Positions 12,227-63,064 of a stretch of 64,000 nt of DNA are shown here, piece after piece. The position numbers and the translations under genes are program-made. The stretch spans positions 1 to 64,000 of IMG/VR virus record IMGVR_UViG_3300029893_000001; one strand, written 5' to 3'. A model generated the notes under the pieces. That model saw nothing but the letters and a program-made list of their open reading frames with translations. It searched no databases and was not told the DNA's origin. Every line of letters starts with the position of its first letter. Position 1 is the stretch's first letter.

Positions 12227-12258
12227 AAAATGGGGGCCGCCGAAGCGACCCCCATTTT
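12227..12258 (-). terminator. Intrinsic terminator after the CCA enzyme gene
   Basis: AAAATGGGGG..CCCCCATTTT stem with long minus-strand T tract. Confidence 0.75.
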
Positions 12259-13519
12259 AGAGAAGAGTACGAGCTTTGGTGAGAAGAATCTGCTTCTCGT
12301 TTCGTGCCGGGTCGTCGAGCACGAACTCCAGGAGCTGCTTAAGCAACTCTCCTAGCTTGCGCGAGGGAGGGATGCCTAGGTGCTCTTGCAGTTCATCGCC
12401 GGAAACGGCAAGGCCTTTTAACTCCAGCGGCACGCCTGGGTCCAGAACCTTCCTGAGACGCTCCCGGAGGGCGATTCGATCGCTCTCCGAGCTGCCGTAG
12501 GGGTTCGACAGGTACACCAGCTCAGCGTCGCGTAGGTAACGAACACCGATATTGCTGGCCCACCTTCGAATTGCGGAATCTTCCCAGGCTAGCATCTCTG
12601 ACACTGAAGGTGCCTCACGAAGTCCAAGAGCTACCCGCTTGATAAGCTCTCGGTCCGCGTTGGACGTCTTCATTGCTCTAAGCCAGATTTCAATGGCTCG
12701 TTCACTGGCCCTGGCCTCCAGAAGAACAGCAGCCATTGCCAAAGGAAAGTTCCTGGGTGCCGAATCTAGCCGAGTCATCGCCCTAGAGAATCTGGCTGCC
12801 TCTAACTCAGCCAGGGGGCCTCCGATTGAGTCTAGAATCCCGGTTCGCTTCATGATGTAGAAAGCGGTAGAGGGCCAGCGTGCCTTTTCTACTGCCTTCA
12901 CCCACTCGGCTAGAATCCGTTCCGACGCCACCTTAGAGAAAGTCTCTAAGTTCGGACGAATTGCCTCTTCCGTGGAGCGCTCCAATTCACACTGGAGTGC
13001 CGCACAGAATCGAGCAGCCCTCAGAACTCGAAGGCCGTCCTCCTTGAACCTTTCCATCGGGTTGCCGACCGCCCGAATGACTTTGGCTTGGAGGTCCTTT
13101 CTTCCGCCCCATGGGTCTGTGATTTCCCCTGAAACAGGATCGGCTGCGATGGCGTTGACGGTGAAATCCCGACGTGCCAAGTCTTCTTCGACTGACTTCA
13201 CGAAGAAAACTTCGTCAGGTCGCCTACCGTCCGAATATGCACCTTCACCACGAAGAGTGGTGACCTCATATCCTTCACGGCCAATCATCACCGTTACGGT
13301 CCCGTGCTGGATTCCAGTTGGGATCGTGTGGGGAAATAGCGACTGGACGTCTCCGGGGAGAGCCTCGGTCGTCAAATCCCAATCTGCTATTTGATTTCCT
13401 GCGCCTCGAAGAAGGTCACGAACGCAACCACCTACAATCCAGGCCTGAAAGCCTGCGCTGCGGAGCGTTGCCGCGACCTGACGGACAGGCTCAGGGATTA
13501 GCGTAGGATCTATTTTCAT
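12257..13519 (-). CDS. cca: CCA tRNA nucleotidyltransferase (class II)
   Basis: VGGCVRDLL..DWD, RGEGAYSDGRRP loop, DLARRDFTVNA and EDGLRVLRAARF motifs. Confidence 0.92.
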   Translation of the reverse strand: MKIDPTLIPEPVRQVAATLRSAGFQAWIVGGCVRDLLRGAGNQIADWDLTTEALPGDVQSLFPHTIPTGIQHGTVTVMIGREGYEVTTLRGEGAYSDGRRPDEVFFVKSVEEDLARRDFTVNAIAADPVSGEITDPWGGRKDLQAKVIRAVGNPMERFKEDGLRVLRAARFCAALQCELERSTEEAIRPNLETFSKVASERILAEWVKAVEKARWPSTAFYIMKRTGILDSIGGPLAELEAARFSRAMTRLDSAPRNFPLAMAAVLLEARASERAIEIWLRAMKTSNADRELIKRVALGLREAPSVSEMLAWEDSAIRRWASNIGVRYLRDAELVYLSNPYGSSESDRIALRERLRKVLDPGVPLELKGLAVSGDELQEHLGIPPSRKLGELLKQLLEFVLDDPARNEKQILLTKARTLL

Positions 13520-33942: not shown

Positions 33943-35151
33943 TCAGCTATCGCTGTTAGGCTCCTGGCCGAGCAACTCCGCCTTGCGGACCGAATTGTCC
34001 TGACGGATATCGTTCACCAGGGTGTCGCGGCCCGCCTTCAAGGCGGTACGCACCGAGCTGTAGAGGTGGCGCCGAACGGCCAGCTCCGCGATCTGGTTGC
34101 GGGTCATCTTGTCGAAAGGCACGTCTCCGACCATCATCGCTTCGACGACGAGGTCCTTTCCGAGCCAGCGAGCCTCGTTGGTCGAAGCGAAGATACCCTG
34201 ACGGGCCGCCTCACGACAGATATCGTCACGGCCCATCGCCGCGAAGCTCGCTCGGCGCTCCTCTTCGGAGGGCTCGCGAAGCTGATATTCCTGCTCCTCC
34301 GACTCCTCGAAATCCTCGTTCTCGATCTCGTCGTCGGAATAGACAGGCTTGATCAGTTCACGAGCCGTGTCCTTGTCCTGGTAGACGTTGACGACTTCAT
34401 ACCGGCAGCAGCGAAGCTTCTGGGTCTCGTACAGCGGGACGCTCACGCAGTCCTTCGGGTTCACCTTCACCACGATCATGGTGTTTCCATACCCACGAGC
34501 GTAGGAAAGCGTTCCGACGTGGAATCCGGCACCGCAAGCTACGCCGCGATTGTCATCCACCCTGTCCCACGGCATCTCGTGCACCTTGCCTGGGGACATG
34601 TCGAAGGACCTGGAATGGCAATCGACGAGCGTCTCGTAGTACTCCCCGGTATCCGGATTTCGAAGCTTGCCGGTCGTGACTCCCTTGTACCCGAGGAAAC
34701 ACCCATCCTCGGTGAGCGGGAACTTGCCCTGCTCCAGGAAATCGAAGAGCGCCTCGCGGCTCTCCTGTCGGGGGTTCTGCTCCAGATTCACGAGGAATCG
34801 GACGAACGACGTGTACGGAAGGCCCGCCTCCTTCAGCTCCAGGATTCGCTTCGTGAGCGAATTGTGGAGCGGCTTTCCCTTCACGGTAACCACTCCGTGC
34901 TCGACCTCAACGTCATTGACGCCGACAGCCAGGAGTTCCTGGCGAAGATCGAGGCGATCCTGACGAATGAGACGGAGCAGAGTCTCGCAGCGTGCTCCCT
35001 CTTCCTCAGGGGTCTCGCCTTCCGGACGCGTGATCCGCGAGACGATTTCCTTGTAGTTGGGGTGACCCGGATCGACCTCGTACGGATGCCCGTCGAGGAC
35101 CAGCGTGAGCTGCTTGTCTAGGAACAAAGAACCAATTCGCTTAGCCATCAT
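33943..35151 (-). CDS. rIIB: rIIB-like protein
   Basis: NP...LFDFL...LTEDGCFLGYKGV...CGAGFHVG...VKVNPKDCVSVP; directly downstream of rIIA. Confidence 0.85.
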   Translation of the reverse strand: MMAKRIGSLFLDKQLTLVLDGHPYEVDPGHPNYKEIVSRITRPEGETPEEEGARCETLLRLIRQDRLDLRQELLAVGVNDVEVEHGVVTVKGKPLHNSLTKRILELKEAGLPYTSFVRFLVNLEQNPRQESREALFDFLEQGKFPLTEDGCFLGYKGVTTGKLRNPDTGEYYETLVDCHSRSFDMSPGKVHEMPWDRVDDNRGVACGAGFHVGTLSYARGYGNTMIVVKVNPKDCVSVPLYETQKLRCCRYEVVNVYQDKDTARELIKPVYSDDEIENEDFEESEEQEYQLREPSEEERRASFAAMGRDDICREAARQGIFASTNEARWLGKDLVVEAMMVGDVPFDKMTRNQIAELAVRRHLYSSVRTALKAGRDTLVNDIRQDNSVRKAELLGQEPNSDS

Positions 35152-35187: not shown

Positions 35188-37446
35188 TCACTCGTTCTCG
35201 TCATCATCTTCTTCGTCTTCGACTTCCTTCACGTCGTCCGTAGGAGCGCCCGTCGTTGCGACGGGACTTGCACGACGCTTTTCATCCATCATGGAGATGT
35301 ACTCTGCCACTGCCACGTACGTAGCATTCTTGTTCGTCCCATAGTCGTCGTACCCATAGCCGTAACCGTGATCGATGTGCCGGAGAATCACGTTGAAGAG
35401 AGGGTAACGAACCAGGAGCCTCTGGGAGTACACCACCTTTTCTGCCTTGCTTCCATGAGGGAGCACCAGACCCAACGCCCCATCCGTATGGTCCGGGCTC
35501 TCCAGGGCTGGCTGAAGCCGAACAAACGGAGGGACCTTTCTCTCCCACGTATAGATTCGATCGAACGTCTTCGAAAAGCGAACGATGTAGCTATCATCAG
35601 CGATGAGCGACTTCTCTTGCAGAGTCGCCGCAAGCTTCCGAGTGCGTTCGATCCTGTTCCGTTCTCTCGACTCCACGTGAGAGAAGAACTCGTAAGCGTA
35701 GCGGAAATCCGAATTGGACAACCAGAATTCGGTGAGCTTCGCCCGAACATAGGCGTCTAGCGTCATCCAGTTTTCCTGATTCTCAAACTTGGACTTGTAC
35801 GCCGTTCGAACCCCCACCAGACCTCCGTCAGGCACATCGATTCCAAGGGCCTTAAGGTTCTGCAGGGCGGCCCGAAGCTGAACCGGCTTCGATGCGAGCG
35901 TGCAGCCGTCTGGATTCCAACGAGTGATCTCAACGTAGACACCCAGGTCCGGCTCGTCGAGATCGATTTCAGCCTCCTTCCAGAAGCAATCGCTGTATCC
36001 GGCGCCATCCATATCGAACTGGAAAGCTCTGGCCTTCGAGCCAGCAAGGCGACTACGACGCCCACCGACCCCACCACCGCCAGTTCGAGCGCGCTTCGGA
36101 ACGGTGGAGGTGAGGACCAGGCTCTTTTCAGGAACGCCGACCGTGTTGCAGAATGCCTTGAGAGCCGCCTTGTTGACCACCGACACGAGGTACGTGTGTT
36201 GACCTCGGTCAAAATGATCCCTGACGTAGTTGCCTAGCCGATACTCGGCACCGCCGAAATCGGCGAGGTAAAACGTCGTCTCGACGGGGTCAATACGCGT
36301 CGTCTTGTTAATCGAAGCGCTGTTAGGAGCGGACGACCGACCACCACGGGGCTCGACAGCCGTGAACTTCAGGACGGAGATTCCCTTGTCGGACGGGATG
36401 TCGATCGTATTCTTGACGATCCTTCCCCTCCACTTCGGCTGAATGTTGAGCTTCTTGAGCCCGGTCCCGTCGAGGAACTTGAACGCACTGACCGTCGCTT
36501 CCCAGAACGTGTGCGACTCTTCGATCTTCCTGGACGCCAGCTCCACGATTTCATCGTAAATCTGTTCCAGTCGATCGTTGATGTTCTGGACAGAGAACTC
36601 CGTCCACTGAATCGATTCGCGGCTGGGAGTCATCTCGAACGAGCCGAGGGGGAAATCCACGACGATGGACAGCCCCAGAACCTTCTTGGCGTTCGAGCTA
36701 AACCCGCTACGGGTGGCCTCGATAGGATACTCGACATTTCCCATCGTGCAGATGTTGCCACCTTCAAGACGCTGGAAAAGCTTCCAGCCATCTCCCTCCA
36801 AGACCGGGTCTTCGGGGTACGAATCCGGCTCGAAGCCTGCGACTCCCTTCACGATGGGCTTGACGACGAAGGGCCGAAGCGCAATCTTCGCCGCCCTCTT
36901 GAAGTCGTAGAAGTCATTCTCATCCACCGAGAACGAAACCTCCAAGCCATTCGGCTCGTCGGTCGGCTGCTCCGCCATCTTGAGGATCTGCGGGAAGCCA
37001 TGTTCGTTGATGATGGCGTTGTAGTGGTACTTGATCCCGTTGTAATAAGAAATCACCGTGAACTTACGGGTGTAAGCGTACGGGCTCTTGGAACCAAGAC
37101 CAAAGCACCCCGTCATCGCGTCCGAGTGCTGCTTCGTGCTCTTGAAGTACGTGGTGTAAACCTGTCGAATACCCATCTCCGACAGGCCAACTCCGTAGTC
37201 CCGAATCTTGAAGACCGGAGCCAATGAATTCGGGAGGTACAACTCGAACGGACGGTCGGTCGTGCCGGCTTCGACATGGGCATCCCACGCGTTGCAGCAC
37301 AGCTCACGAACGATCGCACGGAACGGATCCGAATAGAGGCCCTTCGAGAGAACGCTGAACGCATGAGCGCTAATCTCGATGGAGAAATCACTGGGCCCGA
37401 AATCGCCGTCCATCTGGACAGCCGCGCCCTGAGAAGGTAGACGCAT
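35188..37446 (-). CDS. rIIA: rIIA-like protein (GHKL ATPase N-terminus)
   Basis: LYSD..RAIVRELCCNAWDAH, IRDYGVGLS, STK...GCFGLGSKSPYAY. Confidence 0.88.
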   Translation of the reverse strand: MRLPSQGAAVQMDGDFGPSDFSIEISAHAFSVLSKGLYSDPFRAIVRELCCNAWDAHVEAGTTDRPFELYLPNSLAPVFKIRDYGVGLSEMGIRQVYTTYFKSTKQHSDAMTGCFGLGSKSPYAYTRKFTVISYYNGIKYHYNAIINEHGFPQILKMAEQPTDEPNGLEVSFSVDENDFYDFKRAAKIALRPFVVKPIVKGVAGFEPDSYPEDPVLEGDGWKLFQRLEGGNICTMGNVEYPIEATRSGFSSNAKKVLGLSIVVDFPLGSFEMTPSRESIQWTEFSVQNINDRLEQIYDEIVELASRKIEESHTFWEATVSAFKFLDGTGLKKLNIQPKWRGRIVKNTIDIPSDKGISVLKFTAVEPRGGRSSAPNSASINKTTRIDPVETTFYLADFGGAEYRLGNYVRDHFDRGQHTYLVSVVNKAALKAFCNTVGVPEKSLVLTSTVPKRARTGGGGVGGRRSRLAGSKARAFQFDMDGAGYSDCFWKEAEIDLDEPDLGVYVEITRWNPDGCTLASKPVQLRAALQNLKALGIDVPDGGLVGVRTAYKSKFENQENWMTLDAYVRAKLTEFWLSNSDFRYAYEFFSHVESRERNRIERTRKLAATLQEKSLIADDSYIVRFSKTFDRIYTWERKVPPFVRLQPALESPDHTDGALGLVLPHGSKAEKVVYSQRLLVRYPLFNVILRHIDHGYGYGYDDYGTNKNATYVAVAEYISMMDEKRRASPVATTGAPTDDVKEVEDEEDDDENE

Positions 37447-49716: not shown

Positions 49717-50220
49717 TCATTCTGTTGCGATTTCCAGTGCCTCTCGAACTCGCAAATACCCAGAACCTGTCATCGACTTCCGACCACGAGTGGCCATCTT
49801 ATCGACCCTGTTGTTCATAGCAAATGCGTAGCCGAGAGACGGGTCTTGGTGACCCTTTACATGCTCGGTGAGCACTTGGACGCCGCACTTTTGATACAAG
49901 TCTTGGATCCAACCACGAATCCGAATCATCTCTCGATCACGAACTCTGGACCTGAGCGGCCCCTTCCGTGCGTGACGGAGAGCACACTCAGAGTCCGAGC
50001 GTATTCGAAAGGCGTGAATCTCCTCTCCCCATTCACGAACGGCCAAGGATAGACCCATGTGAATGGCGAACAGCTCGGCGTGGTTGGAGCAAGTCACAAG
50101 ATCGCTGGGGCAGGAACCGTAGTGGACGAGGCGGCCTTTGTCGCTCTCAATGTACACAGCCCATCCACCAGACTGATTGTGGTGGTTGTACGAGCCGTCG
50201 GTGTAGAGCGTTACCAACAT
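49717..50220 (-). CDS. rnhA: Ribonuclease HI
   Basis: YTDGS, NHAELFAI, RSDSE, HVKGH and NNRVDKMA catalytic motifs. Confidence 0.88.
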   Translation of the reverse strand: MLVTLYTDGSYNHHNQSGGWAVYIESDKGRLVHYGSCPSDLVTCSNHAELFAIHMGLSLAVREWGEEIHAFRIRSDSECALRHARKGPLRSRVRDREMIRIRGWIQDLYQKCGVQVLTEHVKGHQDPSLGYAFAMNNRVDKMATRGRKSMTGSGYLRVREALEIATE

Positions 50221-50290: not shown

Positions 50291-50325
50291 CCCGCTACGA
50301 TTCAGTATCCATCACGTTCCACAAA
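50291..50325 (-). repeat. Degenerate trailer-end CRISPR repeat
   Basis: CCCGCTAC-GATTCAGTATCCATCACG, same orientation as the array repeats. Confidence 0.75.
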
Positions 50326-50408
50326 AAGAAAAGTCGCATCACAGACATAGCAGCAAGTTACTTTTGGTCAAACCGCAGGGCCTCTGTCGAGGCGAGTTCT
50401 ACTATTCC

Positions 50409-50740
50409 CCCGCTACCGATTCAGCATCCATCGCGGGTTACGACCGTGCTCGCCCGAGCGTCTCGCTGGCACGCCCACTATCCCGCTACCGATTCAGCAT
50501 CCATCGCGGGTTACGACTTCCCAGCGATCGGCCCTCGCTGGGCTCGTTTCGAGCAACCCCGCTACCGATTCAGCATCCATCGCGGGTTACGACCTTGGGC
50601 GAGCGTTACCTACATCGCATGAGGCCCAGCCCCCGCTACCGATTCAGCATCCATCGCGGGTTACGACGACCAACTGAAGAACCTTGTCCCCCATGGAGTT
50701 ACGGCCCGCTACCGATTCAGCATCCATCGCGGGTTACGAC
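50409..50740 (-). CRISPR. CRISPR array, 5 identical 36-bp repeats and 4 spacers (37, 40, 38, 37 nt)
   Basis: Plus-strand repeat CCCGCTACCGATTCAGCATCCATCGCGGGTTACGAC at 50409, 50482, 50558, 50632 and 50705; orientation inferred from the degenerate trailer and the leader/cas side. Confidence 0.97.
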
Positions 50741-50990
50741 GGGTCCCTCAACTCTGCTGTATTTTCAAGGACCTACAGACTGCTTTGCGAGAGGGTCTTG
50801 CAACGTCCTTATTTTCGCGACCCGGGATGGAGACTGAAACGATACCGAGACGCCTACTCAGCCTACGTTCTCGGATGGAATTCCCCTTGATTTTCAAGGG
50901 TCTGAGTACCTTCGCGAGCGGTGCCCAGTGTCTAGCGATCACTGGACCCCTCGCGCTCGGGCCTAAGCGGGAGGCCCTTTATCACAGACG
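50741..50990 (-). ncRNA. Leader plus putative tracrRNA, anti-repeat at 50814-50849
   Basis: The minus-strand transcript pairs with the repeat at 26/36 Watson-Crick plus 4 G-U positions; extra hairpins CCCTTG/CAAGGG and CCAGTG/CACTGG. Confidence 0.72.
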
Positions 50991-52385
50991 TTACGTCTGA
51001 GAAGACTTACCTCGAAGTCTGCCCGCCGAACGCTTAGCGCTGGTTTTGGCATCGGGTAGTGCAGACGGCTTCCCGTCACGGAGAAGCATGTTCCAGACGT
51101 AGATCACGTCTACAGAACGTTCGAGAAGACACTTAGAACACCTGAATGTGGTACCATTTACGTCTTCGTTTACAGTACCGCAATTAGGGCAAGTTCTCGA
51201 ATTGTAGTCAGAAGGGACTACTTCTACCTCCCACCCCTTCTTCTTTGCGGCCCACAAAATGGCTTCCCTAAGCTGCGCCAATGGAAAACTACGAACGATC
51301 TGTTCGACGTGTTTTCCTAGTTCGGGAGCACCATCTTTTGCCGGGTTAGTCCAATCCTCGATGAGGATTCTGGTCACACCGCGGCGTTCACCCAAACGAA
51401 TGGCGTGAGCTGCGACTTCCTGGCATTTGGTTCGAACCCATCGTTCTTCTGCACCTTTGAGCTTGGTGACACGTTCGTAATGGCGTGCGTGACCGTGGCC
51501 TTTGGCTCCTGTGCCTAGCTGCCGGCGATGACTACTCAAAGATCGTAGTCTGGCTTTGTACACATCCTTGTACCGACGGATGTCTTCTCCCGTTTCAAGG
51601 ATCGTAGTGTAAGCTTCCTGTGACCCTTCCCTAGAAATAGCAACAGACAGGAAGTTTCGGACTCCACGATGAAGTGCCATCGTGCGGCCCTTCGAAACCT
51701 CTTCTACCTCAAAGGAATAGGCAACAAAAGCCTGCCACTTTTGCTTTCCATCGTGAGTCTCACGCACCAATCGAAGGTCCCCCATAGAATCTGGATTCTG
51801 AAGGATCCTCTTAATGGCAGCAAATCCACTGGTGTGGTAGGGCCGAACAACAATACGCGTCCACGGGCCCTTCAGAAGCTGTACGCTGAGAACGGCGCTG
51901 CCGTTCTCAGAGGTCAGCTTAACGCCTTGTCCAACGACGTAAATGGGTGACGGCGACTTGAACGAGGGAAGCGACATCGTCCCTTTCCACGCTTCCTTCT
52001 TCCATTTCTGCCAACGAGCGAATGCCGCGTTAGAAAGTCCAAGAACAGGGGAGCTTGATGGCTGAAGCTGACTGAGTTGGTCGTCTCCTGCATAACTCTT
52101 CTTACGGGCCACTCTGTCGGCTGCCTGCCGACGTTCATTCTCCCAGGAGTCTCTAGTTAAACGATAGGAATCGGTGCGTGGATGTAGATCTTTGCCTCCA
52201 GGGCCCAGGCCGTTTCCCTTCTTGTACTTTCCTGCTCGGTCATTCACCTCTAGGTCGGTGATGACCGAATTCAGTACGCGGTGAAGAGGAAGCTGAATAG
52301 TTCTGAGCTGGGATCCCAAGGTATCCCAGTCACAGTCTAACGGCTTAACGACCTCAAGCCGCAGTGTTGCGATGAGCGTTGCCAT
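50991..52385 (-). CDS. cas12f: Cas12f (type V-F/TnpB-derived) effector with RuvC-I Asp->His, probably nuclease-dead
   Basis: LEVVKPLDCDW, G.MSLPSFK, GAKGHG, RuvC-I MALHRGV, RuvC-II ILIEDW, SRTCPNCG..FRCSKC zinc ribbon, RuvC-III SVDVIY; adjacent array. Confidence 0.9.
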   Translation of the reverse strand: MATLIATLRLEVVKPLDCDWDTLGSQLRTIQLPLHRVLNSVITDLEVNDRAGKYKKGNGLGPGGKDLHPRTDSYRLTRDSWENERRQAADRVARKKSYAGDDQLSQLQPSSSPVLGLSNAAFARWQKWKKEAWKGTMSLPSFKSPSPIYVVGQGVKLTSENGSAVLSVQLLKGPWTRIVVRPYHTSGFAAIKRILQNPDSMGDLRLVRETHDGKQKWQAFVAYSFEVEEVSKGRTMALHRGVRNFLSVAISREGSQEAYTTILETGEDIRRYKDVYKARLRSLSSHRRQLGTGAKGHGHARHYERVTKLKGAEERWVRTKCQEVAAHAIRLGERRGVTRILIEDWTNPAKDGAPELGKHVEQIVRSFPLAQLREAILWAAKKKGWEVEVVPSDYNSRTCPNCGTVNEDVNGTTFRCSKCLLERSVDVIYVWNMLLRDGKPSALPDAKTSAKRSAGRLRGKSSQT

Positions 52386-52962
52386 GCTTAGTCTTGCTCT
52401 TCTTTGCCAACTTCTTTTCAGCTCGAAACTTTTTGACTTCTTCCTTCAACAACGCAACCTGTTGACGGAGTCTTTCGTTCTCTTCTCGGAGCTTTTCGTT
52501 TTCCTTTACGAGGACCGAGTACGATTTATTCCCAGACTTCTGTGCAGCACGCACTGTCTGCTGCTCCTTGACAATGCGCTGCGCCTGCGAATCAGTTAGA
52601 TGCCCATTGCTTTTTTGCGCAATTAGGGCTCTATCGATGGCTTCCTTCATTTCGGGAGCGCCCCTAAGACGTCCAACGTGGGCCAAAATCTTGACAGGTG
52701 CCTTTTCAACCACTTCAGGCGGCAGTGTCTTCACGGCACGGCGATAAGATGAAAACCGAGACACGTCTTGTCGATCGCGAAGAAGACCCTGAGTTTCGCA
52801 AAACTTCAGAAAATCCTGTCCGGATCCCTGCCAGAGATGGGTGTGCTCCTCAGCACTTGCCAAGAAATTGTACCACGCCTTTTCAGAATCCAAATACGCC
52901 TGTCTCAGGCGCTTAGCTTCTGTGATGAACTGTTCTGGGGTCATGGAACTAAAATCGTACAT
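52354..52962 (-). CDS. Uncharacterised Cas12f-associated protein with C-terminal coiled coil
   Basis: Overlaps cas12f start by 32 nt; LVKENEKLREENERLRQQVALLKEEV heptads; 19 nt downstream of a promoter motif. Confidence 0.75.
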   Translation of the reverse strand: MYDFSSMTPEQFITEAKRLRQAYLDSEKAWYNFLASAEEHTHLWQGSGQDFLKFCETQGLLRDRQDVSRFSSYRRAVKTLPPEVVEKAPVKILAHVGRLRGAPEMKEAIDRALIAQKSNGHLTDSQAQRIVKEQQTVRAAQKSGNKSYSVLVKENEKLREENERLRQQVALLKEEVKKFRAEKKLAKKSKTKHGNAHRNTAA

Positions 52963-52980
52963 GGGTCACCTCGTATACTA

Positions 52981-52997
52981 CAGTATCGGCAGGGTTC
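52981..52997 (-). promoter_or_regulatory. Repeated phage promoter motif driving the cas operon
   Basis: CAGTATCGGCAGGGTTC. Confidence 0.75.
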
Positions 52998-53199
52998 GAG
53001 TCCTGAAAGAGGATCAATTCTGCTTCCGTCAGAATCATTTCGTCTTCGATTTCTTCGAAGTCTGGGTACGCTTCTTTCGGAAGAGATTGGACGAAGGGAC
53101 GTACATTTTGATTTGGCCGGTCTTCATTCGGCGCTTGCATTCTGGACACGTCTCTGTAGACGTAACAATCCCCGTCACTCCATCGGCAGTAAGACATGA

Positions 53200-56780: not shown

Positions 56781-57593
56781 TCAATCAGCTTCGATTGTTC
56801 TGTCACTCTTTTCCTCTGTGGCGAGGTACTTGTTGATGTATTCGCGGTCCTGAGAGAAGATAGGGATCTCGTTGTCCACATCCCATCGGGATCGATTTAC
56901 CGTCACAATATCCCCAACAGCGATAGCGGCCGGCGCTGTATACGTAACCCGAACAACGCAGCGGCCACGCTTGTGCCTCGTGGGCAGATCGTTCCAATTC
57001 TGCCCCTTCTGAAAGCACATTTCCTGTAGCAGCTTCGTGTTCTTATTGTGGCACTCTTTGTGGGAGTACATCGAGCGAGCCAGCATCTGAATGCTATTTC
57101 GGCTAGCGTCCTGCTGTCTCCACAAGAAGTAGTTGCAGACGTCGGCCTCAGGGACATTGTACGCCCTGCAATCGAACACGGCAGGACGAATCAAGCTCGC
57201 CTTGTTCAGCACGTCTGGCTGATCAAAGATCTTCCAAGACCACGCAGTAAACGTAGCAGCGGCAATTGCAGCCGGAACCGAACAGATCTTCTGCAGGCGC
57301 CCATCGAAGTACGCTTGTGACGTCAGGGTTTTGTACCCATGGACGAGAATGGAAATCTCGTCACTTTGCACATAGGCAATTTGAGCACCCTGAATCTGTT
57401 CACAGAGCGCTTGCGCAGTGATATCCATGACATCGTTGAGGCGCTCGTCCCACGGCCGCCTGAGCCCCTTGGTGTAAGTATGGAACGCCTTTCCGTCGAT
57501 ACGGAGGATGATCGGCATGCGCGGTACGAGAATGCCATCAGCAGCCTTCTCATATGCCTTCATTCGATCGCCAAGAGTAGTCTTGTCACTCAT
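56781..57593 (-). CDS. tRNA(His) guanylyltransferase Thg1-like protein (3'-5' polymerase)
   Basis: RMKAYE, RIDGKAFHTYT, YVQSDEIS, FDGR..K, FDCR and WRQQDASRNSI motifs. Confidence 0.93.
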   Translation of the reverse strand: MSDKTTLGDRMKAYEKAADGILVPRMPIILRIDGKAFHTYTKGLRRPWDERLNDVMDITAQALCEQIQGAQIAYVQSDEISILVHGYKTLTSQAYFDGRLQKICSVPAAIAAATFTAWSWKIFDQPDVLNKASLIRPAVFDCRAYNVPEADVCNYFLWRQQDASRNSIQMLARSMYSHKECHNKNTKLLQEMCFQKGQNWNDLPTRHKRGRCVVRVTYTAPAAIAVGDIVTVNRSRWDVDNEIPIFSQDREYINKYLATEEKSDRTIEAD

Positions 57594-60447: not shown

Positions 60448-62160
60448 TCACTTCATCCTCATCTCAAAAAGCGTCTCACCGCGGGTGAAGCCAAGACGAC
60501 CGCCTCTCTTTACGAGGTGCATATCGCCTCCCAGTGCTTTGTCCTCGACTACCTTCACTGACGACGAGCCCTTCTTGGAGCTGAAGAGTTCGAGATTTTC
60601 ATCTTCAGTCAAGCAGGCGCAAACCCCGGTGTCCAGTACAACGAAATTTAAGCCAGTAGGTGTGATATCTTCCACCTCGCGTACATCGTACGACGTGAAG
60701 TCGTCCGTAAATCTGAAGATAAATCGATTGTACTTGCCGTTTTTCGTCGTGATAGCCATCAAGACGCCCCCGTCGAACTTGATGTCTACGACCTTGACCG
60801 GATCTAGCTCCGGAATTCGAATCTGATAGCTCGCCTTGGACCGAGGGAACAGCGAGACGAAGGTTGAGCCTAGCATGTCCTGAAGCACGCCGCCCTGAAA
60901 GAGTCGGCTCGCCCTCTCCATGACCGTGGCCAGCTCTCGCGTGGACGCGATGATCTTCGGCCGCCCGTCGGCGTGCTGAGTCTCGGTGAGCACCACCTCC
61001 AAGACACGGTCTCGGTTCCGAATGTACAGGCGCCCGTCGTACGACGCCAGCTCGTCAGCACGTGACACGAAGGGAATCGCGTCACCACTGACACCGCACA
61101 GCATCACCTGCGACGTACTCTGGTCGATACGAGCCACTACGGGATACTGTCCAACCGGGGTAAATCCTACCTCGATAGGGTCGGGGGAATAGAAGGCAGT
61201 TCGAGGCCCAACCCAAACAGACCCGTCTTGGGTTTGAGTAATTCCTGTACTCGCGTTTCCGAAGTAAAAGAATCGCCTAATTGTGTGCGGGTACTCCTGG
61301 AGCTTCTTGATGTCCAGGTGGCCCGATGAAACGATCGTCCGGATCTGCTGAACAGCCCACGCAACAGCCTGCAAATCTGTCGGGGGCGGCAAGCGCTTCT
61401 TGTCCTGAAAGACCGCCTTGAACCAAGAACGGTATGCTTCAGGAATGACATCCAATGGGTAACAGACCCGAGGCACCGAAACAGCCGGATCAAATACGGA
61501 GGCGCACGCCTTCATGCGGTCTTCGAGCGCCTTGATAGACGGGTGCTTTCCTTTGTACGGATGAATCCCAATGAAGAGCTGGAACGCCAGAATCCCAAAG
61601 CTGAACCAGTCGCTTAGCTCGGTGAAATCACCATGAAGCGTGAGAGGATCGCGGACGGACGGCATAATCGCCGTGGCCGGATAATGCTTCGTCTGGTAGC
61701 TGTCGACGTCGATCCAAAACGCTTGGCCAAAATCCTTCGATACGAGGACGTTCATCTCGTTCAGGTCTACAACAAGCACCCCTGCCTTGTGAATTTCGAC
61801 CACGTTCTTCTGCATCGTTTGAACGAGCGAAAGAACCTTCTGGTGGTCCAGTCCCTCACGCTCCCGGAAGGAGCGAGGGAAAAGCTGGCATAAGGCGAGG
61901 GTATCCGAAATGAATCGCATCGTATACCCAAGCGACCTCCCCCGCTCATCACAGATGATGTCCTTGGGACGAATCACGTTCGGGTCGGAGATTCCAGAAA
62001 GCTCCGATATCTTCCCCTCGGGGATCATCTTTTTCGGGTCAGTGTACAACTTGTAGGCTACCTGGCCCTTTACGTACACTGAGCCTTCCCCACCGGAAGC
62101 AAGGAAGTCATTCTTCGACAGATTCACGGCAGTGGAGCTGCCTTTGACGTAGACCTTCAT
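60448..62160 (-). CDS. YegI-like Ser/Thr protein kinase with C-terminal beta-rich domain
   Basis: SGGEGSVY, YKLY, VVDLNEMNVLV, IDVDSYQ, DWFSF...GIHPYKG. Confidence 0.85.
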   Translation of the reverse strand: MKVYVKGSSTAVNLSKNDFLASGGEGSVYVKGQVAYKLYTDPKKMIPEGKISELSGISDPNVIRPKDIICDERGRSLGYTMRFISDTLALCQLFPRSFREREGLDHQKVLSLVQTMQKNVVEIHKAGVLVVDLNEMNVLVSKDFGQAFWIDVDSYQTKHYPATAIMPSVRDPLTLHGDFTELSDWFSFGILAFQLFIGIHPYKGKHPSIKALEDRMKACASVFDPAVSVPRVCYPLDVIPEAYRSWFKAVFQDKKRLPPPTDLQAVAWAVQQIRTIVSSGHLDIKKLQEYPHTIRRFFYFGNASTGITQTQDGSVWVGPRTAFYSPDPIEVGFTPVGQYPVVARIDQSTSQVMLCGVSGDAIPFVSRADELASYDGRLYIRNRDRVLEVVLTETQHADGRPKIIASTRELATVMERASRLFQGGVLQDMLGSTFVSLFPRSKASYQIRIPELDPVKVVDIKFDGGVLMAITTKNGKYNRFIFRFTDDFTSYDVREVEDITPTGLNFVVLDTGVCACLTEDENLELFSSKKGSSSVKVVEDKALGGDMHLVKRGGRLGFTRGETLFEMRMK

Positions 62161-62648: not shown

Positions 62649-63064
62649 TCATACAGAAGTTGTCTCGCCGCTTTGAGGTCCATGATGACGTAGGTAGTTA
62701 GTAGCTCTCTGGGTGAGGCGGTAGTTTGTTACGGCAAATTTGGTCCCGTCTTGGGACGACTTCCCGCGAGAACGCCCCCTACGAAGATAGCCATTCAGGG
62801 CCAAAGATTCCATTTGATCTTTTGCTTCCCTGAACCTGAAATTATCTCGAATGAAATCGCGAGCGCCGTAGTAATCCCGAGCAACTTCAGCACAAAAAAC
62901 AGGCTTGCTCCGACGTTGGATCCAGTGAAGGAGTAGCACGTCCCGCGTCTGCAGACCGGTTTCGGACCGGATGGCCTCTGCCATCGCAAAACTTCTGCTC
63001 GTGATATTCTTATGATCGCAAAACTTCTGCTCGTGATATTCTTATGCTGCCAATGTACCTTCAT
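62649..63064 (-). pseudogene. Winged-helix-like gene frameshifted by a 32-bp duplication
   Basis: With one repeat copy, the ATGA-coupled start at 63064 reads MKVHWQHKNITSRSFAMAEAIRS... in frame with 62649..62984. Confidence 0.7.
62983..63046. repeat. Perfect 32-bp tandem duplication
   Basis: ATCGCAAAACTTCTGCTCGTGATATTCTTATG x2. Confidence 0.95.

Follow-up and report, generated by a model that had tools for sequence, protein, structure and literature searches.

A phage-borne Cas12f-type CRISPR locus with a conserved histidine at RuvC-I, a covarying tracrRNA and a linked partner gene

Organisation of the locus

The window analysed here, a 64,000-nt stretch of DNA corresponding to positions 1 to 64,000 of the IMG/VR virus record IMGVR_UViG_3300029893_000001, carries on its minus strand a compact CRISPR locus, whose effector is by homology a Cas12f-type protein with histidine at the position of the first catalytic aspartate of the RuvC nuclease domain. 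Read along that strand (50291-52962), the open reading frame (ORF) of a small partner protein is followed by the effector ORF, a 250-nt non-coding stretch, the array and a decayed repeat. This arrangement had been proposed in an earlier, sequence-only reading of the window, and all of the main elements were found where that reading had placed them. The two genes are:

52354..52962, minus strand: partner gene, 202 amino acids (ORF call)
50991..52385, minus strand: effector gene, 464 amino acids, AsCas12f-type (V-F1/V-U3), with a His-Glu-Asp RuvC triad (ORF call and homology)

The two ORFs share 32 nt, the stop codon of the partner overlapping the start of the effector, and are probably part of a longer operon, because the partner start codon itself overlaps the stop of an upstream co-directional ORF of 82 amino acids (52949-53197). 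The effector, the trans-activating CRISPR RNA (tracrRNA) and the mini-array are co-directional, with no terminator-like site detected between them. A phage promoter that the sequence-only reading had placed at 52981 did not hold up, as a consensus scan of that strand returned no sigma-70-type promoter there. The absence of cas1, cas2, cas4 and of an adjacent transposase, also noted in that reading, was borne out: none of these genes, nor tnpA, was found among the larger ORFs between ~39.9 and 62.2 kb of the window, and no transposon ends are present at the locus.

The CRISPR system is phage-borne and lies on a huge-phage contig of roughly 400 kb. The window is phage DNA, with homologues of both RIIA and RIIB, a strong match to PHROG 1735 and other PHROG matches, and the effector protein is on record in a 403,515-bp contig as well as in the 392,328-bp IMG/VR contig IMGVR_UViG_3300029893_000001.

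Identity of the effector

The best matches of the effector in the PDB are structures of AsCas12f (8j12, E 1e-20 by single-sequence phmmer), and a profile built from its family matches AsCas12f over the full length (residues 4-431) at E 1e-43. The PADLOC models Cas12u3 (8e-37) and Cas12f (6e-36) both recognise it, as does Pfam PF07282 (Cas12f1-like TNB domain). It shows the Cas12f1 domain order (WED/REC/RuvC/TNB) and a C4 zinc ribbon, in which homologues never depart from C399 and C402, and scarcely ever from C416 and C419:

51129..51191, minus strand: CxxC...CxxC zinc ribbon of the TNB domain (C399, C402, C416, C419; PF07282 and conserved cysteines)

The motif-by-motif likeness to AsCas12f1 that had been recognised by eye is fully visible in the alignment with 8j12, including VKPLD.DW, G.MS.PS.K, the glycine-rich GHG box and the zinc ribbon. 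Cas12m, CasPhi, Cas12g and the dCas12f of the sigma-E system gave much weaker profile matches, or matches to the zinc finger only. Taken together, homology places the effector as an AsCas12f-type (V-F1, formerly V-U3) Cas12f, a derivative of Cas12f1 by descent.

Two other identities were considered and rejected. A TnpB transposon protein is not indicated, as there is no tnpA among the larger ORFs between ~39.9 and 62.2 kb, the NCBIfam model guided_TnpB reaches 62.6 bits, short of its cutoff of 100, and both an array and a separate tracrRNA are present. Membership of Cas12m was set aside because the sole Cas12m chain matched was UnCas12m4a, at E 1e-3 and in the zinc-finger region, and a single-sequence search matched none.

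The altered RuvC active site

Aligned with AsCas12f (8j12), the effector reads MALHRGV against MGIDLGV, IEDWT against MEDLT, and ERSVD against EANAD. The canonical Asp-Glu-Asp triad is thereby replaced by His-Glu-Asp, with the change at RuvC-I and with E343 and D426 kept, as had been read from the sequence:

51669..51671, minus strand: His239 codon CAT (51671-51669), at the RuvC-I position of the AsCas12f catalytic Asp (8j12 alignment)
51357..51359, minus strand: Glu343 codon GAG, RuvC-II, retained (alignments)
51108..51110, minus strand: Asp426 codon GAC, RuvC-III, retained (alignments)

The RuvC-III motif has also been reshaped in the clade, to D..[FYA].WNM from the canonical NAD.NAA.NI. In the same 8j12 alignment, an AsCas12f arginine upstream of the second half of the zinc finger falls opposite a gap in this effector; that residue (R383) is one which we take to be needed for cleavage, and the gap is treated as a lead only.

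The conservation of the site was followed at two depths. A protein search found 41 homologues of the effector, at 29-72% identity, and in an alignment of 39 of them, down to 35% identity, His239 is nearly invariant (one Arg), and Arg240 and Gly241 are unchanged throughout. When 1.84 billion cluster representatives were searched exhaustively without a profile, 656 relatives were obtained, 303 of them below 1e-10, and the full-length nearest relatives, comprising the best 150 clusters at 50% identity and the close homologues from the first search, were assembled into an alignment of 162 proteins. The RuvC-I residue in these is His in 116, Asn in 21 and Arg in 19, with Lys, Leu, Ile and Ala also occurring. 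The commonest triads are HED (96), NED (20), RED (9), HDD (7) and REE (7), with rarer forms including HGD, RAD and RQD, such that the RuvC-II position is sometimes Gly, Ala or Gln. In a tree of the relatives, the window effector belongs to a clade of 48 members with support 1.0, in which 45 have His and three have Arg; most of the other large clades are likewise dominated by His, the exception being a clade of 23 that is mostly Asn.

The sequence-only reading had raised two contrary prospects, that close relatives might carry Asp at this codon, or that they might share the His: Asp occurs in none of the 162, and the His is shared by nearly all of the 39 and by most of the wider set. An origin of the His codon in faulty sequencing or in recent decay was accordingly considered and rejected, as the His is family-wide and the IMG/VR copy of the contig encodes the effector with 100% identity. 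Since His239-Arg240-Gly241 is nearly invariant down to 35% identity and Asp never occupies the first position in 162 relatives, the comparative evidence indicates that the RuvC-I replacement is old and selected, rather than a product of decay.

Nucleases of the RNase H fold use the first RuvC Asp to bridge their two metal ions, and characterised Cas12 enzymes no longer cleave when it is lost. The interchange of His, Arg, Lys and Asn at this position across the family, with occasional loss of the RuvC-II carboxylate, appears to fit phosphate or strand binding better than two-metal catalysis. By analogy with Cas12m2, it is reasonably probable that the complex takes hold of target DNA and stays on it, making no double-strand break. 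A competing explanation, which we regard as rather unlikely, is that the protein is an altered but active HED nuclease or nickase, forming a phage-borne interference module against rival phages, plasmids or the host chromosome, in the manner of CasPhi or Cas-lambda, with the partner assisting or regulating it. Such an enzyme would have to dispense with the metal-bridging Asp; Cas12m2, with His at RuvC-I, does not cut, and the Arg, Lys, Leu, Ile or Ala found at RuvC-I in relatives, with Gly, Ala or Gln at RuvC-II, are hard to square with a common catalysis. Several observations would nonetheless suit it. Purifying selection acts strongly on the three triad residues, on the zinc ribbon and on the RuvC/TNB fold as a whole, interference systems typically have arrays with several spacers, and known dead derivatives (dCas12f-sigmaE, TldR) are usually truncated or scrambled in this region (PMC13472631); moreover, Altae-Tran et al. 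argue that conserved, specific RuvC replacements often signify retained activity with altered specificity (PMC10691335).

Guide RNAs and array

The 250-nt gap that separates the effector from the array, described in the sequence-only reading as a structured leader with an anti-repeat, does contain an anti-repeat and a set of covarying helices. The five identical repeats and degenerate trailer of that reading were also recovered, and together form the only CRISPR array within the window:

50845..50976, minus strand: tracrRNA scaffold, four conserved helices directly 3' of the effector stop (conserved over 7-10 loci)
50814..50850, minus strand: anti-repeat, oriented as the effector and array are, with complementarity along all 36 nt of the repeat and mismatches at regular intervals
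50785..50793, minus strand: CTCGCAA box between anti-repeat and first repeat (invariant or near-invariant columns)
50409..50740, minus strand: CRISPR array of five 36-nt repeats, all identical, with starts at 50740, 50667, 50593, 50517 and 50444
50704-50668, 50631-50594, 50557-50518 and 50481-50445, minus strand: spacers S1, S2, S3 and S4; S5 runs from 50408
50291..50322, minus strand: degenerate terminal repeat, ~29/36 positions matching with small indels, 85 nt past the last intact repeat

The spacers between intact repeats are 37-40 nt long. RNAalifold predicted 29 pairs in the tracrRNA scaffold, 13 of them with compensatory changes, and in a recount 94.5% of cells were paired and 14 pairs covaried, figures that fell to 29-52% and 3-5 on shifting the partners by 1-3 columns; no Rfam family matched. 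The duplex of anti-repeat and repeat has a calculated energy of -45.0 kcal/mol, compared with -31.3 +/- 3.0 for shuffled repeats. Although repeats vary between loci, the best partner of each intergenic region is its own repeat in the window and in three relatives (L005, L012 and L019), with an exception in L003, where the anti-repeat is shortened and the locus's own repeat is not the best partner. The CTCGCAA box is found even in the distant loci L019, L022 and L023; it may belong to the 3' end of the tracrRNA, or serve in processing or as a promoter element. The tracrRNA is real, and the guide-RNA apparatus is complete, conserved and of the Cas12f dual-RNA type.

Where the contigs of relatives reach far enough, their arrays have 3-6 repeats with degenerate distal copies, and the arrays of L005 and L006, one locus recovered from two independent samples, are identical. 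Many other contigs stop a few hundred bases past the effector, as expected if the repeats break assembly. Two side observations concern arrays in relatives. Spacers 1 and 2 of L005 (L005:7682-7795) share an 11-nt motif in opposite orientation, for which the chance expectation is roughly 4e-4, and may target related or palindromic sites; spacer 2 ends in a truncated copy of the repeat. Virus Rctr197k has a second, much larger annotated array of about 1.5 kb (L017:10803-14219; KX853510 110803-114219), adjoining a disrupted feature of ~1.9 kb labelled ‘similar to transposase’ and lying roughly 7 kb from its His-type Cas12f locus, which may mean that this phage has another type V system, perhaps a broken one.

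Spacer targets

Targets were sought in several collections. The window spacers have no protospacer in the window or in any of the fetched loci, and the whole array found no target among GenBank phages. The 22-nt seeds of S1-S5 matched only their own array in IMG/VR, and no target was found for S1 and S2 in JGI metagenome contigs, or for S1 and S5 in GTDB species genomes. The spacers of Rctr197k gave only chance-level matches to its own 197-kb genome and to GenBank phages.

The short array with its degenerate last repeat, the want of spacer targets in these collections, and one relative (L007) with a frameshift in its partner gene and degenerate repeats, would all be consistent with a locus in decay that has no current function, be it the pseudogene of a dead Cas12f or a relic of a TnpB-type transposon. 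This is highly improbable and, given the conservation data, effectively refuted. The reading frame is intact and matches AsCas12f over its full length, more than 40 homologues are conserved full length (in the alignment of 39, 19 columns are invariant and conservation reaches 90% or above in a further 66), the tracrRNA helices covary, repeat and anti-repeat co-vary between loci, and the five repeats are identical, with neither tnpA nor transposon ends at hand.

The partner protein

An AlphaFold2 model of the partner, with a predicted local distance difference test score of 89 overall and 92 for the N-terminal domain, is entirely helical, and is composed of a seven-helix N-terminal domain of about 145 amino acids, a leucine-zipper helix of ~50 residues and a basic tail. 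Pfam, NCBIfam, PHROGs and PADLOC gave nothing significant for the protein, the coiled-coil matches in Pfam being sub-threshold, and no significant match was obtained in the PDB, either by profile against sequences or by Foldseek with the full model and the N-terminal domain. No Sigma70 domains were detected with Pfam, NCBIfam or PHROGs. Weak fold hints point to the helix-turn-helix region of ParB (E about 1), and BFVD gave weak matches to uncharacterised phage proteins, one of which is labelled DUF3102.

Whether homologues share this upstream gene had been asked in the sequence-only reading, and the gene proves to be a regular companion: it adjoins the effector in 9/10 close loci, in which the other neighbours are unrelated. 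A homologue of about 195-225 amino acids lies directly upstream of the effector in L001, L002, L003, L004, L005/6, L008, L009/10 and L012, usually overlapping it by 4 nt; L003 is Virus Rctr197k, in which partner and effector are genes _118 and _117. The association extends to relatives whose effectors are just 33-36% identical, in altered arrangements. In L019 the partner homologue follows the array (hhalign probability 99.1%, E 5e-19), in L022 it lies directly after the effector and before the tracrRNA, and in L023 it comes after a tracrRNA-like region, the hidden Markov model matches of the latter two being E 1e-30 and 9e-16, respectively. A relative of the NED type, L021, has neither partner nor array. 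Because the linkage survives four gene orders, it argues for partner and effector being a functional pair, in a two-protein system.

Two of these loci have features of their own. In L023 (L023:5414-6220), an Arg-Glu-Asp relative, some 200 nt resembling a tracrRNA come after the effector and then the partner, with no repeats before the end of the contig, and this may be a single-guide, array-less form, or an array may have been cut off. In L002 (L002:1764-4292), a Ro60/TROVE and vWA protein and a protein with a peptide-chain release factor domain are encoded just upstream of the partner-effector pair.

The effector might alternatively work by itself, as a binder or a cutter, with the partner either regulating the locus, as an Aca-like dimer or an autorepressor, or being a neighbour of no relevance. 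Regulation through DNA binding could suit a helical dimer that ends in a basic tail, and the hints to the ParB helix-turn-helix region, weak as they are, lean the same way. We nevertheless think this unlikely. The linkage holds over four gene orders, down to 33-36% effector identity and in otherwise unrelated neighbourhoods, the two genes overlap translationally in most loci, and no recognisable helix-turn-helix family was found with Pfam, NCBIfam, PHROGs or PADLOC. A dedicated regulator would stay linked too, such that these observations weaken the alternative only. Most likely, the partner acts as a dimer and as a co-factor to the complex once this is bound.

Proposed mechanism

A scheme for the system, based on homology to Cas12f and analogy to its relatives, would begin with a transcript that is converted to guides, each consisting of a repeat-derived handle and about 20 nt of spacer loaded on the 464-amino-acid protein, with the tracrRNA anti-repeat pairing with each array repeat. 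With the first RuvC carboxylate swapped for His-Arg, the complex would open an R-loop and stay bound, making no double-strand cut, and the His/Glu/Asp pocket may hold the displaced strand, much as the HDD pocket of Cas12m2 does. The leucine-zipper partner, as a dimeric co-factor of the effector complex, would turn binding into an outcome, the candidates being a stronger roadblock, the bridging of two bound complexes, or the recruitment of a host or phage factor. In this way the phage could silence chosen DNA programmably during infection, be it that of competing mobile elements or host genes. The array would be inherited and not actively renewed, because adaptation genes are absent nearby.

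Several points weigh against binding without cleavage and the silencing built upon it. Conservation of the three triad positions and of the zinc ribbon is equally expected of an active enzyme. The His-Glu-Asp site could still support catalysis, for example with one metal or by nicking. The linkage of partner and effector is seen, while contact between them is inferred only, and the fold of the partner gives no functional clue. Finally, no protospacer was found in the collections searched, hence neither silencing nor a class of target is demonstrated.

A further reading, advanced tentatively as a possibility, extends the non-cutting complex to a two-component RNA-guided effector, hitherto unrecognised and common on phage and phage-like contigs, in which the Cas12f part finds and holds the DNA and the dimeric coiled-coil partner delivers a new output. 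That output may be the recruitment or blocking of RNA polymerase, the bridging or condensing of DNA, or the loading of another factor.

Genomic setting

Directly downstream of the degenerate repeat lies an RNase H gene (49717-50220; Pfam PF00075, E 2e-12). As RNase H removes RNA from RNA-DNA hybrids, its position adjoining an R-loop-forming system is suggestive, but it is not conserved as the downstream neighbour at the other loci checked.

Further afield, the window encodes a Thg1-family tRNA-His guanylyltransferase (56781-57593) and a CCA-adding tRNA nucleotidyltransferase (12257-13519), with functions in tRNA repair and maturation, and no tRNA genes were found in the 64 kb. The RIIB-like (33943-35151) and RIIA-like (35188-37446) genes are adjacent, and only the N-terminal half of the RIIA-like protein (752 amino acids) is matched by the PHROG profile. 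At 60448-62160, an ORF of 570 amino acids has a weak match to protein kinases (PF00069, E 1e-6, under the Pfam cutoff), and at 62983-63046 a 32-nt unit is duplicated in exact tandem.

Significance

The His-type Cas12f proteins are found largely on phage or phage-like contigs. If they bind without cutting, a large group would join the few naturally non-cutting RNA-guided DNA binders (Cas12k, Cas12m, TldR and dCas12f-sigmaE). The altered site is common to 150 or more clusters at 50% identity, which shows that a specific replacement for the first RuvC carboxylate has long been selected within the Cas12f1 lineage. Interest rests chiefly on how large the clade is and on its conserved partner. The partner offers a handle on how binding becomes a biological effect, a similar association having led to the discovery of dCas12f-sigmaE, and the system bears on how huge phages may use inherited mini-arrays against hosts or competitors. 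A natural DNA binder of 464 amino acids with a defined tracrRNA and CRISPR RNA (crRNA), and possibly its own effector module, would also be of technological interest. Should the two-component reading prove true, the 464- and 202-amino-acid proteins would amount to a natural ‘dCas plus effector domain’ device for reprogramming host or rival genomes, and the system would merit its own type V subtype.

Comparison with known systems

The closest known system is AsCas12f1 (V-F1), with which the locus shares full-length effector homology, domain order, the C4 zinc ribbon, 36-nt repeats, and a long tracrRNA with a 3' anti-repeat located between effector and array; the proteins are also of similar size (422 amino acids, against 464 here). 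It differs in having His-Arg in place of the RuvC-I Asp across the clade and a reshaped RuvC-III motif, in being encoded by a phage without cas1/2/4 nearby, and in possessing a coiled-coil partner gene that is missing from canonical Cas12f loci.

The comparison with Cas12m (V-M) made in the sequence-only reading stands as a likeness of the active site, but does not extend to membership. Both have a non-canonical triad with His or Asn at RuvC-I, and Cas12m clades show H/N variation too; in MmCas12m2, a single Mg2+ and the non-target strand are bound at an HDD site, and the protein binds and silences DNA without cutting (PMC10442227). Homology is, however, confined to the zinc finger (E 1e-3), RuvC-II is mostly Glu in this group as opposed to Asp in Cas12m, and Cas12m proteins are about 600 amino acids long, use crRNA only, are mostly chromosomal or plasmid-borne and have no dedicated partner, whereas a tracrRNA and a partner are present here. 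The likeness to Cas12m is thus best read, by analogy, as one of active-site chemistry and not of descent.

TldR is similarly a compact RNA-guided repressor derived from a RuvC nuclease, and some TldRs are reportedly prophage-encoded and repress host genes, which sets a precedent for phages employing a dead protein with a guide RNA. They derive from TnpB, with a degraded RuvC and a single omega-RNA-like guide, and have no array or tracrRNA, whereas the present effector is a CRISPR-associated derivative of Cas12f1 with a specific substitution. CasPhi (Cas12j) and Cas-lambda are likewise borne by huge phages, with a mini-array and no adaptation genes, but they are active nucleases that use crRNA only, and are barely related to the effector (E 0.015-0.065, the CasPhi chains over the zinc finger).

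Related proteins with altered catalytic sites have been mentioned previously. Al-Shayeb et al. (2020) suggested that a phage ‘dCas14’ lacking a catalytic residue might repress the host glycyl-tRNA synthetase gene (PMC7162821). That protein is a different one, and the paper describes neither a partner nor a family-wide His; the signature motifs of the His-type Cas12f family are absent from the 2020 huge-phage Cas14 sequence file. Large branches of Cas12f in which the catalytic site is altered are noted by Altae-Tran et al., who give no detail (PMC10691335). No description of the His-type clade, its partner or its tracrRNA was found in the searchable literature, the scope of which excludes subscription-only papers, and the group is large and apparently previously undescribed. 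The system departs in some defining feature from each of the Cas12f, Cas12m, dCas12f-sigmaE and phage mini-CRISPR families.

For an effector coupled to a partner, the best conceptual model is dCas12f-sigmaE of the Bacteroidetes (PMC13472631), in which an inactive effector derived from Cas12f is coupled to a small partner that provides the output. The two are distant relatives (9n9c, E 1e-8). In dCas12f-sigmaE the effector is C-terminally truncated with the loss of RuvC-III, the array has been lost in favour of a single guide, and the partner is an extracytoplasmic function sigma factor (rpoE), whereas here Asp426, the C-terminus and the array are all kept, alongside a partner without sigma-factor domains.

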